A stretch of 64,000 nucleotides of DNA from positions 124,001 through 188,000 of the forward strand of contig JALMLS010000179.1 in NCBI GenBank assembly GCA_038496445.1, in the 5' to 3' direction. This document shows positions 5,412 through 10,958 of the stretch, one piece after another (position 1 is the first letter of the stretch; the number at the start of each line of letters is the position of its first letter). The notes beneath the pieces are model-generated. The model was given only the letters and a program-made list of their open reading frames with translations, had not been told where the DNA came from and did not search any database. The translations under genes were made by a program, and so were the position numbers. Source of the DNA: Trichosphaerium sp. ATCC 40318. Taxonomy: Eukaryota; Protista; Tubulinea.

Positions 5412-5545
5412 AGACAATAAACAATAACAAACAAACAAACAATAAATAGTGTTATTCAGGTCAAATCCGAGCTAGCAAGCACAGAAAAAATATGACGATT
5501 ATGACTATCAAAAATAGTCAGATTCTCTTGTTGTGAGTACATCTC

Positions 5546-8500
5546 ATGGGAAATGTACATACCAACTAGCACGTTAACGCTAATTACTGTGTAATAGTCG
5601 CACCACAAGCCTAATGCGAGTAAGAAATACCAGTTTGTACGCATGGAAGGTATTGTTACTCCTGAAATGCAAAAAACTCTTCTAAACGGTACGTTGATGC
5701 GATTTATTGTTATATTCAAGGTTAATAAGCCCCACGTAATATTCAACGCTTGAATGGCTTAAACTATTTATAAAAGGCATCTCTTACACTGCAAAAAGCT
5801 ACCCAAAAACGAAAAAAGTGGCTAACAAGACTTCTAACTACAAAAAATTATTTGTACGGGATTTTACCCAAAAGCGTATCCCAGAGTCCTTTAAGGACGT
5901 AATAAGCCCTATTTCATGGGAAGCGCATCAACAAGAACGTACGCTACCAGTTCAGGAGTCAAAAACGGTTTCAATGAATAAATATCAGATTAACTGTGCT
6001 TAAAAAAAACCGGTCTTTGCTTCCTTTTGATGCCTCTTTAGGAGCTATACCTAAAAATTATAATGCTATATGTACTACTTGTTATAGCTATGGTGATGGA
6101 GGTAAGCTTGGTGGTCATGTAGACTTTATACAGTGCGTACACAATCAAGTTTGTTACATTATTTTTTTGTAAAATTGTACTTTACTTGGAGGCCAGTAGT
6201 TCTTGCTTCCTTTTTTTTAATTGACTCTTCTGTGTTTTTTAGAGGATGGATTATGGTTATTTCGTTGGGTCGTAGTGCCGAGTTTTGGTACAAAGAGCCA
6301 GGTTGTGAGAAAGTCAGTAAGTGATGATTGATGAACACTCTTTTGGTTTTTTTTGGGTTTCGGCCTTCCTTTACACTTGTCTAACAATATCTTTAAGCGT
6401 TTACTGTAAAAAGTGGTGATGCTGTTATGTTCAATGGAAGTGCTGCTTGTGGTATTAAGCATGGTACATAGAAAGAAGACAAAGATATCTTTTTTTTGTT
6501 CAACTTTCTCTTTAGGTGTTTCATCAATCGGACCCAAGGATACATACCCAGATTACCTACCAGAGGAATTTTCATCTAAGAGGATTAGCTTACAATTTCG
6601 TAATGGCCCTAACAACGAAACCCCCGAACCGTCAGATGATGATGAGTGGTTTTATGACTTTCATTCGACTCGTGTTTGGAACATTTCAGCTGAGAGATTT
6701 GAAGCTGATAGTGAGTATACTTTACTCTTTTTTTTTCAAAGAATACTATATTCTAATCACGTGGTTTTAGTTTCTCCATCACATGATATCTCATTAGCAC
6801 TAGAACAATGTCATTTTTCAAAACTGGCACCAGAAATTTTGGAGTATTTTTGGGAGTATTCTTCGCTTACTTCTCTTCATTCTTGTGCTGCTACTTGTCA
6901 TAAATTAAGACATTCCATGTACGCTTTGAGATACTTGCCAAAGTGATTGTGTAATGGATTGTAGTTTGAGTATCAAGGAGTATGTTAAAGTCAGTGATAA
7001 GTTCTATCACTGCTTTCAAACGCTAGACTATTTGAGGTATCAGCCATGGACAGCATTTAAAGGGTAAGTTTTAGTGGCTTTATAGATTAATTTCTAACAC
7101 AATATAGGTGTGATTTAAAAGACAAGTGTGTAACAGTAGACATTGGGACAAACCAAGTGAGGTAAAGTTGTTTTTGAACCAAGGGAAAATCAGTTTATTT
7201 TATCATTGTTGCTAACTTGGCTTTGAAGGTTTGGTATGAACTTAAAGGATCAAAATAAACCTCCAAGGATAGTTACAATACCTTGTTTGGTTGGTAAGGA
7301 CCCTGAGACATCGGAAATTTACTATGGAGACAATGTAATCCTTAGGTAAGATAACTTCTTTGTTTGGTATCATCTAATATCTTTTCAAGAAGAAAAGAAC
7401 TTGAACTGTCAAGACCAGTTGTGAGTTGTGTGATAGAAGATTGGGATGCTATAACCCATCTATTAAAACAAGGGTTTCTCAAGCTAGGGATTATCACTGT
7501 TGATTGTGCAATAATGGTATCACTGCCTGATATGTCTTCGTGCGTGCTTTAATAAGCTCTGGTTTTTGTTACTAATTCATATCAGCAAGGAATCGCGATG
7601 TCGCATATGTGAAATCCTGTTTGATGAGTTCCAAGCTTTATCTATGTATGTAGCTAATTCCTCCTTATTGTCGTTAATAAAGTGTGGTACGTAATGCATG
7701 TTTATTGAAGTGTCTTAAAAGCTTTGTTTTTTTTTTCATTTGTTTTGGTTGCTTGGACAACCCTTTCAGCTAATGTAATTTGTCTTTAGAGGAGTCGACA
7801 GGGTTTATCACACATATAGGGGCCGATTTTAGTTACTCAGTATTAATTTATGAAGGGCGTCCGGAAAGAAAACCACTTGTCTATCCTGTTGGAGGAAATC
7901 ATATCTTTGATAAGTTTCTGTCTTTCCTCGACGAGGGAGATAAGGTATAAGTCATTCTTATGAACTTAGCTGTATTTTAATACTGTATAGGCAATAGTTG
8001 AAGAAGATCGGTTCATGCTTGAGCCTTGGTTCTTTGAAAACAAGTTTTCTGTTTCTCCTGAACCAAAAACAAGTGTTAACAAAAGTGTAAAGTCAACAGT
8101 TTCTCTTCCAAATGGAAAGAGTATAAGTGTTCCTGAAGGAGCTTTCGAAGCATGTTTTGATGTTTTATTTGAAGATGGAGAGTTTGCAAAGGTACATATT
8201 ACATTATGGTAGTTATAGCCATTGTTAACTAGATTTACTTAGATAGTCATAAAAAGTGGGCAACCGGTAATGTATGATCAAAACCATTTCAATCACTTTG
8301 TAGTAGGTGCGTTGTCTTTACCTTTAATGTAATAGTATTATGTTATCTAATGGAGATAATAAGGAGCTACTGCGGGTGTTGATGGAATGAAAGTAAGACT
8401 TGAAAGAGAAGTTGAAGCAGCTGGTAAAAAGGTGTGTTTTCTGCGGTTTTTTTTGTTGGAGCTAATGCAGTTTTAGATTAAAACTGTAGGATACGATACT

Positions 8501-8750
8501 AAGTCGAATTTATGGAATCTGGAAGGAGGAATAATGTTATCTTCTTTATCTACTTTTCAAAAAATGTGGTATGTCACAAATCTAAAATGAAAGACTTTCG
8601 TATTTTTTTCTTATTTTTTATTCCTTGACCCGACTTTATATTACATATTGCGTTGTGCGCACTTTGTTAATCTATTAATGTTTGTGTAGGGTATTTATAG
8701 AAGAATATAAAGACAGTGGACCAAAAATAGTAAACAGAAAATGTTTCTAA
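5546..8750 (+). CDS. Tri-domain protein: AlkB-like 2OG-Fe(II) dioxygenase + F-box + actin-related (ARP) domain, about 19 exons
   Basis: Spliced product: MGN|SHHK...YSYGDGGKLGGHVD...MVISLGRSAEF...VKSGDAVMFNG...HGV...RISLQFR (AlkB HxD/H/R motifs); LAPEILEYFWEYSSLTSLHSCAATCHKLR (F-box); VTVDIGTNQVRFG, IEDWD, EILFDEF, VLIYEG, GGIMLSSLSTFQKMW|VFIEEYKDSGPKIVNRKCF* (actin fold). All junctions are phase-consistent. Confidence 0.85.
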
Positions 8751-10958
8751 AAGCATTACTAGTAAACGGATCATCATTCGTTGTGTTGTTGTTGCTTGGC
8801 ACGCTGTCACTTGGGCTAGTGGTACTTGGTGCATCACCGCTTGGCTCATTGTCAGATGGCACATTAGTGCTTGGCACAGTGTCAGTTGGTACAGTATCAC
8901 TAGGCACAATGTTCTCCAATTCAAGAAAAGGACCCCAATATCCTCCATTTTCTATGGCCTTTTCACAAGCTTTAGGATCAGCTTCCTCGTAAGTTACTAT
9001 AAAAACATCCTGTGCTAGTTCCATAGATCGAGACATCATGCTTGTATGAATATCGGGTAGAGCTTGAGATAAGTCTTGGTGTTCTGTTGGGTCATCAAAG
9101 ATATTGTAAAGACAACCGTCTCTACAGGTTTGAGAGTCTTCTCTTTCGAGGTATTTCTCAGTGGCATTAGGGTATTGAGGTCCTGTCCAGCCTTTTATGT
9201 GTTAGAAGTTACAGTTGAGGGTTGTTGTTTAACAACAAAGCAAGATTTTGACTACATACCTGCGTAAGGCATATTTCCTAGAACGATTTTGTACTCTCCT
9301 GATATTAGGTTCACATGAGTAGGAGATCCTCCACCTCCAATAGTAACACTTGACAGCGGTATTTCTCCACGTGGGGAAGTAGTTGTTTCGCCTGAAATCA
9401 AACTAAAGGAAACTATGGGTAAAGTGTTTTCGTCTTCATGATTTTAATTTGGGTGTTCACGTACGGCCACATGTTAATACTGTCCACTGGAGGTAGACCC
9501 TCCTCGTTACCCTCGTGATCTATTGGATCAGCACCGCTTAGGTAGCAGAATGTAGCATACCAATCGCAAACGTGAATCAATCCTTCTTGTGTTGTTCCTC
9601 TCATTGTGTCGGGTAAAAATCCTCCTGAAACAATAGCTGTTGCTCTTATACCACCTTCCCAGTCGCTTCCTTTTGATCCTTTTAGAGGATAGTTATTACC
9701 TCCTCCGTCTGTTGTACTACCCCATGGTTCTTGCTGAGTTGGACTGTAGTTGTAAGATAAATAACAAGAGATTCATTCAACAACATACCCTCCGTTGTCA
9801 GCAGCGAAAATAAATACAGTGTTATCCCACAACCCATTATCTTTCAGAGCATCCGTTATGTTTCCAACGGATTCATCAAGGAATGTTACCATTCCTTGGT
9901 AGTACTTCCGTCTGTCATTATCAGGAGGGTTTGGATATCTATCAATGTATTCTTGAGGAACTTGAAGAGGTGCTAGAATAGTAGTAAGAACAAGTCACCA
10001 CAATTGAAAGCGTTACCATGAGGATTTTGTAGTGCAACATACATAAATAACGGGTCGTTGGGGTCATGGGCCTTTATAGTATCTATGGCAGCATTTGCAA
10101 ACGTGTACTCACTGTAAGTTCCGTTTAAACCGTAAGCAGGCTTATCAGTCTTAAGACGTTTGTTAAACAATGATGTGACATAGTATAAAGTACCTCCCAA
10201 AAGTCTACAAAGCTATCAGTGCATGCCAGAGATCTGATTTTCTGCGTATAATAATCAATAGCACCACTAAAATATCCAATAGAAGTATCAAAACCTCTTC
10301 CAGTAGGCGTGACGTCAGGGTAAGCCTAGCACACATTTAGAAAAAAAAAGAAAAAAAAACGTTTGGCTTGAACCAAAAATATCACGTGCCATCCCAATGT
10401 GCCACTTCCCTGCGTTTTACGTTATTTACAAGACAGTTGAAAATAAACATATTTAGAAGGTAGTTCAATAAAAGAATAAACTGTTTTCTTCTTACCATAA
10501 AAGTGAGTTGAATAGCCAACATCCTTGAGCTTCCGTGATATCATTGTCATATTCCTTGGTACACCTCCATTTGGAATAGTTATTGCAGTATTCTTTTCAT
10601 TCACGTGTATAGGTAGGCGACCAGACATTAGAGAAGAGCGTGTAGGAGAGCAAACCTGGTACATTACTTAAATTAACAAAATCTCTGTTTATCTTGGCAC
10701 TTGATACCTTATAGGCGTAGTGTCGTGATAATTCGACGCCATTATCTTTTAAGTCATTCAGAGCAGGTGAAATTATTCTCGAGTTGTGATAGCCTACATT
10801 ATACCAACCAAGGTCCTAGCAATTATAATTATAACTTGTAGCTAGCATAAGGGTTGTTTTTGTACATCAGCAAGAACGAGAACAATGTTGGGTTTAGACG
10901 ATTGGCAATAAACAGTGACACTTATTAACAGAACAAACAGGGAGCACAGCAGTTGCAT
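8695..10958 (-). CDS. Arylsulfatase (ARSB-like), secreted, probably GPI- or membrane-anchored
   Basis: Signal peptide MQLLCSLFVLLISVTVYC, then KPNIVLVLAD, CSPTRSSLMSGR (formylglycine motif), GKWHIG, DNGG, PLKGSKGSDWEGGIR. Ends in a Ser/Thr/Pro linker and a hydrophobic C-terminus. Confidence 0.92.

Follow-up and report, generated by a model that had tools for sequence, protein, structure and literature searches.

A stretch of 56 nucleotides (nt) in the genome of the amoeba Trichosphaerium sp. ATCC 40318 was found to lie in open coding frames of both strands at once. It occupies positions 8695-8750 of the window, by which is meant the whole stretch of DNA analysed (64,000 nt; G000:C22:124001-188000; contig JALMLS010000179.1), and it carries the end of an actin-like gene on the + strand and the end of an arylsulfatase-B-like gene on the - strand. 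The stop codons are counted in this length; sense codons of the two strands share 50 nt (8698-8747), and codon positions 1, 2, and 3 of the + strand face codon positions 1, 3, and 2 of the - strand. Both frames are open over the shared bases, and each is joined to a bona fide gene. An overlap of this kind had been claimed in an earlier note on this DNA, whose coordinates and two translations were matched to the base; the observed overlap is confirmed, and the interpretation placed on it there is partly supported. That both strands are truly coding at 8695-8750, as a true convergent overlap of two coding sequences, is judged probable. Signs of selection were found on each reading (conservation in a paralog, with differences rich in third positions, on the + strand; codon bias, directional substitutions, and an excess of synonymous changes in a repeat stalk on the - strand), the statistics being modest and post hoc. 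The genome (70 Mb, 37% GC) contains many short spliceosomal introns; spliced models were searched exon by exon, and exons were joined only across single junctions, for the placement of splice sites, or in the case of the paralog protein P0004 on its own locus.

The + strand reading closes an actin-like gene. Its penultimate exon (8477-8568) ends in GGIMLSSLSTFQKM followed by TG, the first two bases of a split Trp codon (TTTCAAAAAATGTG at 8568; STFQKM plus TG), and is 67% identical at the amino-acid level to the corresponding exon of the paralog. The donor GTATGT starts at 8569 with a score inside the range of real donors, and the last intron (8569-8689, 121 nt, GTATGT...TGTGTAG) runs to the acceptor ag at 8688-8689. 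The terminal exon (8690-8750) supplies the last base of the Trp codon, then 19 codons (VFIEEYKDSGPKIVNRKCF) and the stop TAA at 8748-8750. When this end was compared with the canonical actin end of the same genome (ISKEEYDESGPAIVHRKCF), 12 of the 19 residues were identical and the stop fell at the same position; the conserved actin C-terminus EY.(D/E)SGP.IVHRKCF is present up to the stop. The gene is called actin-like, rather than actin, because the Pfam Actin (PF00022) matches of single exons fall below threshold (E=0.0061 and 0.038; 15.6 and 13 bits vs a cut-off of 27). The actin family is very large genome-wide, with 128 exon-level PF00022 matches at E<=1e-10, and includes many near-identical canonical copies that end in ISKEEYDESGPAIVHRKCF and have C-rich third positions.

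When the genome of the organism itself was searched at the DNA level, two further copies of the region came to light, one on contig C55 and one on C126. The duplicated unit (5540-8852, + strand) comprises the whole actin-like gene and 102 nt of its 3' flank and is 78% identical to both copies (L019 2057-5415 on G000:C55; L020 1613-4953 on G000:C126). Since these two are 96% alike over 7 kb and the C126 copy lies at a contig start, they are regarded as haplotigs or as a recent duplication. Identity between window and paralog alternates between stretches of 82-93% without indels and stretches of 60-70% with indels, as would be expected for the exons and introns of a gene under constraint. The last intron in particular carries indels of 10, 2, and 4 nt (none a multiple of three) and is less conserved than its flanking exons, and the donor TGGTATGTC and the acceptor (TAG followed by GGTAT) are kept. 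The paralog's terminal exon reads VSVEEYEDSGPDIVQRKCF up to its stop; the SGP.IV.RKCF end, the splice sites, and the frame are all conserved. Judged by this comparison, the terminal exon is real and constrained, and the use of the acceptor at 8689, on which the earlier note had made its case depend, is borne out by the donor, acceptor, frame, and RKCF end retained in the paralog. The reduction in synonymous divergence that had been foreseen for the overlap was not seen, as 5 of the 10 nucleotide differences between the two terminal exons sit on + third positions. Within the duplicated unit, no F-box was matched by Pfam in 6410-6943 at E<=1, although LAPEILEYFWEYSSLTSL is F-box-like by eye.

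Downstream of the actin-like stop, homology to the paralog continues through the 3' flank (8751-8852, both strands) and ends at 8852. A 13-nt block immediately 3' of the stop (CATTACTAGTAAA, 8755-8767) is identical in the paralog and contains AGTAAA (8761-8766, + strand), a putative poly(A) signal of the actin-like mRNA 11 nt past its stop. On the - strand the flank encodes the part of the sulfatase tail that reads SGDAPSTTSPSDSVPSNNNTTNDDPFTSNA(F), and the same 13-nt block encodes (F)TSNA, the candidate omega site discussed below. The matching - frame of the paralog reads TTM, a stop, QATDAPSVNILSGTVTSNNTSNDDIY, and then three stops in succession; five stops occur in it altogether, and its frame is changed by an indel of 5 nt immediately ahead of the exon. 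No sulfatase was found beside the paralogous actin-like copy, where the next gene seems to lie on the + strand. At L019 5400-5440 (G000:C55, - strand) an acceptor-like TTATTTTGTTTTTTTACACTTGCAG is seen where homology to the window ceases; it is probably a chance occurrence, since no - strand gene is evident beyond it.

The - strand gene (8695-10958) starts with ATG at 10958, contains 10 introns of 44-86 nt, and encodes an arylsulfatase-B-like protein with the motif CSPTRSS. None of its 11 exons is interrupted, the motifs are conserved, the splice sites are good, and on these features the gene is intact. PF00884 was matched exon by exon (E=6.5e-11 at 9776-9994, 1e-5 at 10425-10667, and 0.011 at 9976-10212), and the formylglycine motif C-x-P-x-R is present as CSPTRSS within VCSPTRSSLMSGR in exon 3. 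The start, MQLLCSLFVLLISVTVYCQ (MQLLCSLFVLLISVTVYCQSS), is signal-peptide-like by eye. P0004, a transcript-derived protein of the same organism (for which an MMETSP transcriptome exists) that matches a paralog on C27 at 100% across six introns, covers all sulfatase exons (tblastn), and in donor type the 10 short introns agree with the six that P0004 verifies. One of them, at 10389-10326 (-), is a GC-AG intron with the donor GCACGTGA; the P0004 paralog has a GT-AG intron there, after WHIGM. The last exon (8695-9191) follows an intron at 9259-9192 that was placed with P0004 as a guide; its frame is open from 9201 to 8698 and ends in TSNAFRNIFCLLFLVHCLYILL before the stop TAA at 8697-8695. The conserved C-terminal part (8927-9191) ends in GGYWGPF and was aligned to human ARSB (1fsu) up to its last residues. 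The arylsulfatase family of this genome is large, since the last exon gave at least 24 genome matches.

The protein does not stop at the usual G(Y/F)WGP(W/F) terminus: the family-typical end motif is found at 8944-8927, but 76 residues come after it, and no in-frame stop occurs on the - strand from 8926 to 8697. The extension begins with a stalk (8788-8907, period 15 by Tandem Repeats Finder) of eight 15-nt, five-residue units, VPSDT VPTDT VPSTN VPSDN EPSGD APSTT SPSDS VPSNN. Among these PS(D/T)-rich units, 32 of 100 differing codon pairs are synonymous in the sulfatase frame, the two remaining frames giving 5 of 83 and 6 of 82; the synonymous changes are CCT/CCA, GTG/GTA, and GAT/GAC, with one Ser codon TCT and the rest AGY. 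By this pattern the stalk is coding in the sulfatase frame. The end of the tail (8698-8787) reads NTTNDDPFTSNAFRN and then the hydrophobic IFCLLFLVHCLYILL (8742-8698), with a mean Kyte-Doolittle (KD) hydropathy of 2.81 over the last 15 residues. The extension as a whole draws on three sources: a minisatellite, which the paralog also has in its 3' flank, and the reverse strand of two parts of the neighbouring gene, namely its 3' flank and its last exon.

This extension is specific to the present sulfatase copy: the tail occurs in none of the own-genome paralogs with ends that were read, nor in any of about 186 relatives. The own-genome paralogs stop 2-10 residues past GYWGPF. The nearest of them (G000:C22:194459-194764 (+), 6.4 kb past the end of the window, 57% identity in the last exon) ends in GGYWGPFIDVDVVLSE, which aligns with GGYWGPFLELENIVPSD of the window copy; on that alignment the ancestral sulfatase stop would have lain about ten codons past GPF, near 8895. 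The relatives were the 150 best library representatives, 106 of them with a recognisable end motif, and 80 full-length relatives. The protein ends within 10 residues of the motif in 76 of the 106 and in 62 of the 80. None of the 16 longer-ended relatives among the 150 best library representatives has hydrophobic last 15 residues, and the same result was obtained in the 80 full-length relatives. The polarity implied by the overprinting proposed in the earlier note, an old actin C-terminal exon and a young tail, fits this distribution. A different extension was seen in P0040, a sulfatase of another organism, which continues for 132 residues past GYYGPF with a true transmembrane helix and a cytosolic tail; because of that helix, membrane tethering is taken to have arisen elsewhere in the sulfatase family by a different route.

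In order to see how the two readings bear on each other, the facing codon positions have to be considered: since the third position of a + codon faces the second position of a - codon, A at the former gives T at the latter and hence Phe, Leu, Ile, or Val. The proposal that an A-rich + strand exon supplies T-rich antisense codons agrees with what was counted. A occupies the third position in 12 of the 19 codons of the terminal exon vs 33.7% in the remaining exons of the gene, which total 386 codons (binomial p=0.008). Synonymous versions of the exon were drawn with the gene's own codon usage; the canonical actin peptide used in the codon-table and resampling step departs at two residues from the end that canonical actins have in this genome. 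The antisense frame was open in about 30% of the draws, so that an open frame alone is unremarkable. The hydropathy of the last 15 antisense residues averaged 0.75 with a 95th percentile of 1.86, and the observed 2.81 was reached in 0.016% of draws; in a six-frame translation of the window, 0.14% of stop-terminated 15-mers are as hydrophobic. The canonical actin genes of this genome, with their C-rich third positions, give antisense peptides that are polar and often interrupted by stops.

The differences from the paralog point the same way. At 7 of the 10 differing sites in the terminal exon A is found only in the window copy and at 1 only in the paralog, vs 154:167 in the rest of the gene (Fisher p=0.033), an excess larger than in all 162 sliding windows. 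The 102-nt flank is GC-richer in the window than in the paralog (15:5, p=0.038). Read on the - strand, the window differences turn the paralog's FFVLYLDHCLHTLLRIP into FCLLFLVHCLYILL, each followed by a stop, with HT becoming YI and YLD becoming FLV; for the actin-like protein they mean, from paralog to window, the replacements E to K, D to K, Q to N, S to F, and V to I. Canonical actin sides in residue type with the paralog, and not with the window copy, at two of these positions, by an identical Ser at one and an acidic residue (E vs D) at the other. With the very distant canonical actin as the only outgroup, there is a weak hint that the window copy carries the derived state in S to F and in acidic to K. 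Two histories may be envisaged, either an overlap that preceded the duplication and decayed in the freed copy or a tail that formed after the actin-like gene landed by the sulfatase, and both would imply selection on the - frame. The former is favoured because the stalk units diverge in a coding style and some are common to the paralog's flank.

A membrane-retaining role of some sort is mildly favoured for the tail. The nearest pattern is that of GPI (glycosylphosphatidylinositol)-anchored ectoenzymes made with a signal at the C-terminus that can be cleaved off; alkaline phosphatase, 5'-nucleotidase, and the trypanosome VSG are examples. The sulfatase resembles them in its signal-peptide-like start, its Ser/Thr/Pro-rich stalk, the small triplet S-N-A, the terminal hydrophobic stretch, and the absence of a charged cytosolic tail, the likeness being one of sequence; it differs in the length of the spacer, as given below. 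The candidate signal consists of S-N-A at 8760-8752, the spacer FRN, and the 15-residue IFCLLFLVHCLYILL, with nothing after it. Genes for GPI transamidase subunits were found in the genome above cut-off: PIG-T/Gpi16 (PF04113), GAA1 (PF04114), and PIG-U (PF06728). We know of no GPI-anchored sulfatase of this family. GPI anchoring of the enzyme is accordingly offered as a possibility whose chances are put slightly below even.

The following course of events would account for the arrangement. The ancestral sulfatase would have ended soon past GGYWGPF, and its stop would have been lost in this copy, by stop loss or repeat expansion (the order of events being a reconstruction). Translation would then have run on through the 15-nt minisatellite, read as a Pro/Ser/Thr/Asp-rich stalk, into the antisense of the 3' flank of the actin-like gene and finally into 18 antisense codons of its terminal exon, where the A-ending exon codons (12 of 19) would become NTN codons that spell IFCLLFLVHCLYILL before a stop is reached. 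A candidate N-terminal signal peptide would send the enzyme into the endoplasmic reticulum (ER); the Pro/Ser/Thr-rich stalk would likely be an O-glycosylated spacer; and S-N-A with the hydrophobic end would most likely act as a GPI-attachment signal, or else as a membrane-retaining hydrophobic end. Either type of anchor would keep the sulfatase on the cell surface, atop a glycosylated stalk. The sulfatase 3' untranslated region (UTR) would lie in the last intron of the actin-like gene, where AATAAA, a putative poly(A) signal, is found at 8617-8622 on the - strand, 73 nt past the stop. The motif is absent at this place in the paralog, and its position is only suggestive because only some sulfatase paralogs have AATAAA downstream. 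From these models we infer that both mRNAs are transcribed through the overlap. To judge from the putative poly(A) signals, mRNAs made from both genes at once would be complementary to each other at roughly 8600-8790; this could add mutual regulation. The full proposal is that a GPI-type signal was made de novo by an actin-family exon read backwards, that both readings have since become mutually adapted, and that the freed copy drifted back toward actin-like residues and gained antisense stops. It is put forward tentatively, at somewhat less than even odds.

Several observations weigh against the reading of this locus as two overlapping coding sequences with an anchor-like tail. The asymmetry tests are post hoc, rely on 10 and 20 differences, and reach p values of about 0.03-0.04, and the changes were polarised by the very distant canonical actin only. 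The terminal exon of the paralog also has A at 10 of 19 third positions, an open antisense frame, and an antisense KD of 1.59, so part of the third-position bias is older or intrinsic. The length of the open reading frame (ORF) was rejected as evidence: stops are absent from the 15-nt repeat in one + frame as well as in two - frames, and length alone therefore means little. The spacer from omega+2 to the hydrophobic stretch is about three residues (FRN), shorter than usual, and the 20 residues past the omega site are near the short end of known GPI signals. None of the approximately 186 relatives has such an end, so a lipid-anchored form has no precedent in the family. Finally, the libraries searched yielded neither transcripts nor proteins for this sulfatase or for the actin-like gene.

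Many of these observations would suit the alternative that the overlap is translated but is a tolerated accident. A stop loss or repeat expansion would have let translation run on, and the hydrophobic end would be a by-product of an A-rich exon read backwards, with no anchoring role; it may then cause ER retention or degradation or form a plain membrane-embedded end. The roughly 30% of synonymous exon versions with an open antisense frame, the openness of the frame in the paralog, the partly intrinsic hydrophobicity that the paralog's value of 1.59 indicates, the lack of such an end in every relative, and the short spacer past the candidate omega site are all what an accident would lead one to expect. 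It would not readily explain why the window-specific changes all push the antisense peptide toward hydrophobicity, at the cost of non-conservative changes in the actin-like protein (E/D to K, S to F), or why a KD of 2.81 lies far above the 95th percentile of the resampled exons. The protein-level constraint on the stalk argues that the extension is not young junk, and the tail remained open while the homologous stretch of the paralog gained five stops and a frameshift. An accident is regarded as unlikely on balance.

It might also be supposed that the hydrophobic tail is never made and that the actin-like gene alone is coding in 8695-8750, the sulfatase mRNA being spliced within the tail (8759-8672 or 8892-8747) or polyadenylated before the overlap. 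All paralogs read and nearly all relatives end near GYWGPF, as this would have it, and GT...AG pairs of fitting length are present. Every GT...AG pair in the tail was enumerated and scored with matrices from 15 real introns. The candidate at 8759-8672 (GTAATG...TTAATAG), which would give an end in DDPFTN, was rejected: its donor score of -2.2 is under those of all 15 real donors and of 82% of decoy GTs, and its acceptor scores -0.8. The candidate at 8892-8747 has better sites (donor 6.6, in the real range; acceptor 3.1) but was rejected as well, because it would delete the coding-constrained stalk, is oversized (146 nt vs 40-87 nt in the sulfatase family), and still reads into the actin exon, in another frame. 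Early polyadenylation fits poorly, since AATAAA is found not within the tail coding stretch but 73 nt past the stop at 8695, and since polyadenylation ahead of the stop would yield a non-stop mRNA. The reach of the sulfatase frame into the overlap, as originally claimed, stands on these results: the frame meets no stop ahead of 8695, and none of the introns that could be drawn in the tail is credible.

The transcript searches yielded nothing that would exclude splicing or early cleavage. A word search with the last sulfatase exon returned one distant Logan protein only, and the proteins that an all-library HMMER search gave for the sulfatase tail exon were at most 47% identical, the tail itself being matched by none of them. 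With P0004 as the query, this sulfatase copy was not returned from the transcript-derived protein sets. Exact look-ups of the sulfatase ORF gave no match, and an exact 38-nt search and a protein-guided search of metagenome contigs gave nothing close, with distant relatives at most. The case for a coding tail rests on sequence, since no transcript was found; even so, a tail that is never made is considered quite improbable.

Least probable of all is an assembly error or a silent pseudogene with a fortuitously open tail. In its favour, the transcript-derived protein sets that contain P0004 lack both this copy and the paralog nearest to it, and the repeat array is open in several frames. Against it, the 11 exons are without exception open and have conserved motifs and good splice sites, the overlap sequence is vouched for by the actin frame and the paralog, 8751-8926 contains no long homopolymer run able to hide an assembly frameshift, a wrong number of repeat units would leave the frame intact at a period of 15, and the stalk shows a coding pattern. 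No Rfam match was obtained in 8000-9600, and no part of the window had a human or viral appearance.

Two-strand coding is rare in cellular eukaryotes and is usually catalogued without the role of the overlapped peptide or the order in which the readings arose. The closest known case is the bidirectional coding overlap of TRα2 (THRA) and Rev-erbα (NR1D1) in eutherian mammals, which spans 67 codons, arises via alternative splicing, and has cDNA and functional support (PMC4569393, PMC3047299). In both, convergent genes overlap in their last exons with both strands coding, and a younger, lineage-specific C-terminal extension lies antisense to an older, conserved terminal coding exon. Antisense stops are found where the second reading is absent, in marsupials there and in the C55/C126 paralog here. 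The present case differs in its length (18 codons), in being known from sequence alone, and in its product, an anchor-like hydrophobic terminus on an amoeba's secreted enzyme rather than part of a nuclear-receptor variant. Among different-strand pairs, overlapping coding regions were catalogued for 51 in human and 28 in mouse (Sanna et al. 2008, PMC2335118). The convergent orientation, the commonest there, and the 3' extension of one gene into its neighbour are shared with the present pair, whereas most of those overlaps involve UTRs only and the coding-coding cases were listed without a role for the overlapped peptide.

Overprinting of new frames on existing genes is best known from viruses (PMC8227390), and models for the emergence of antisense ORFs have been described (PMC11266595). 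As in overprinting generally, a new reading would here be laid over an old one, each would constrain the codons of the other, and the composition of the young peptide would be dictated by the old frame. In contrast to viral overprinting, the product is the C-terminal extension of an existing cellular gene and not a new gene, and the overlap is antisense and short. The frame relation found here (+ 1, 2, and 3 facing - 1, 3, and 2) is not, on our reading of the description in PMC11266595, the one in which a sense ORF lowers the frequency of antisense stops. With regard to the enzyme, the protein resembles ARSB (N-acetylgalactosamine-4-sulfatase; 1fsu; PF00884) in its catalytic domain, in CSPTRSS, and in a C-terminal region that aligns to the very end of ARSB; it departs from the family by the 76-residue extension past the normal end, P0040 being anchored instead by its transmembrane helix.

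The arrangement matters, first, by its clear polarity, with an ancient actin C-terminus on one strand and, on the other, a tail that neither the paralogs read nor any of about 186 relatives have. The job proposed for the new peptide is simple, namely to hold a secreted sulfatase on a membrane, and the paralog of the older gene without the overlap allows the cost of dual coding to be read directly. Stop loss, a 3'-UTR minisatellite, and a neighbour's exon could jointly build both a stalk and an anchor. For annotators of compact protist genomes, it follows that overlapping convergent gene models should not be trimmed. Were the proposal of a de novo GPI-type signal true, mutual adaptation would mean that the actin-like protein accepted Lys, Asn, and Phe together with A-ending codons that make the antisense peptide hydrophobic, and the locus would represent antisense overprinting in a cellular eukaryote for which the polarity is known, the new peptide has a defined function, and the paralog supplies a built-in control.

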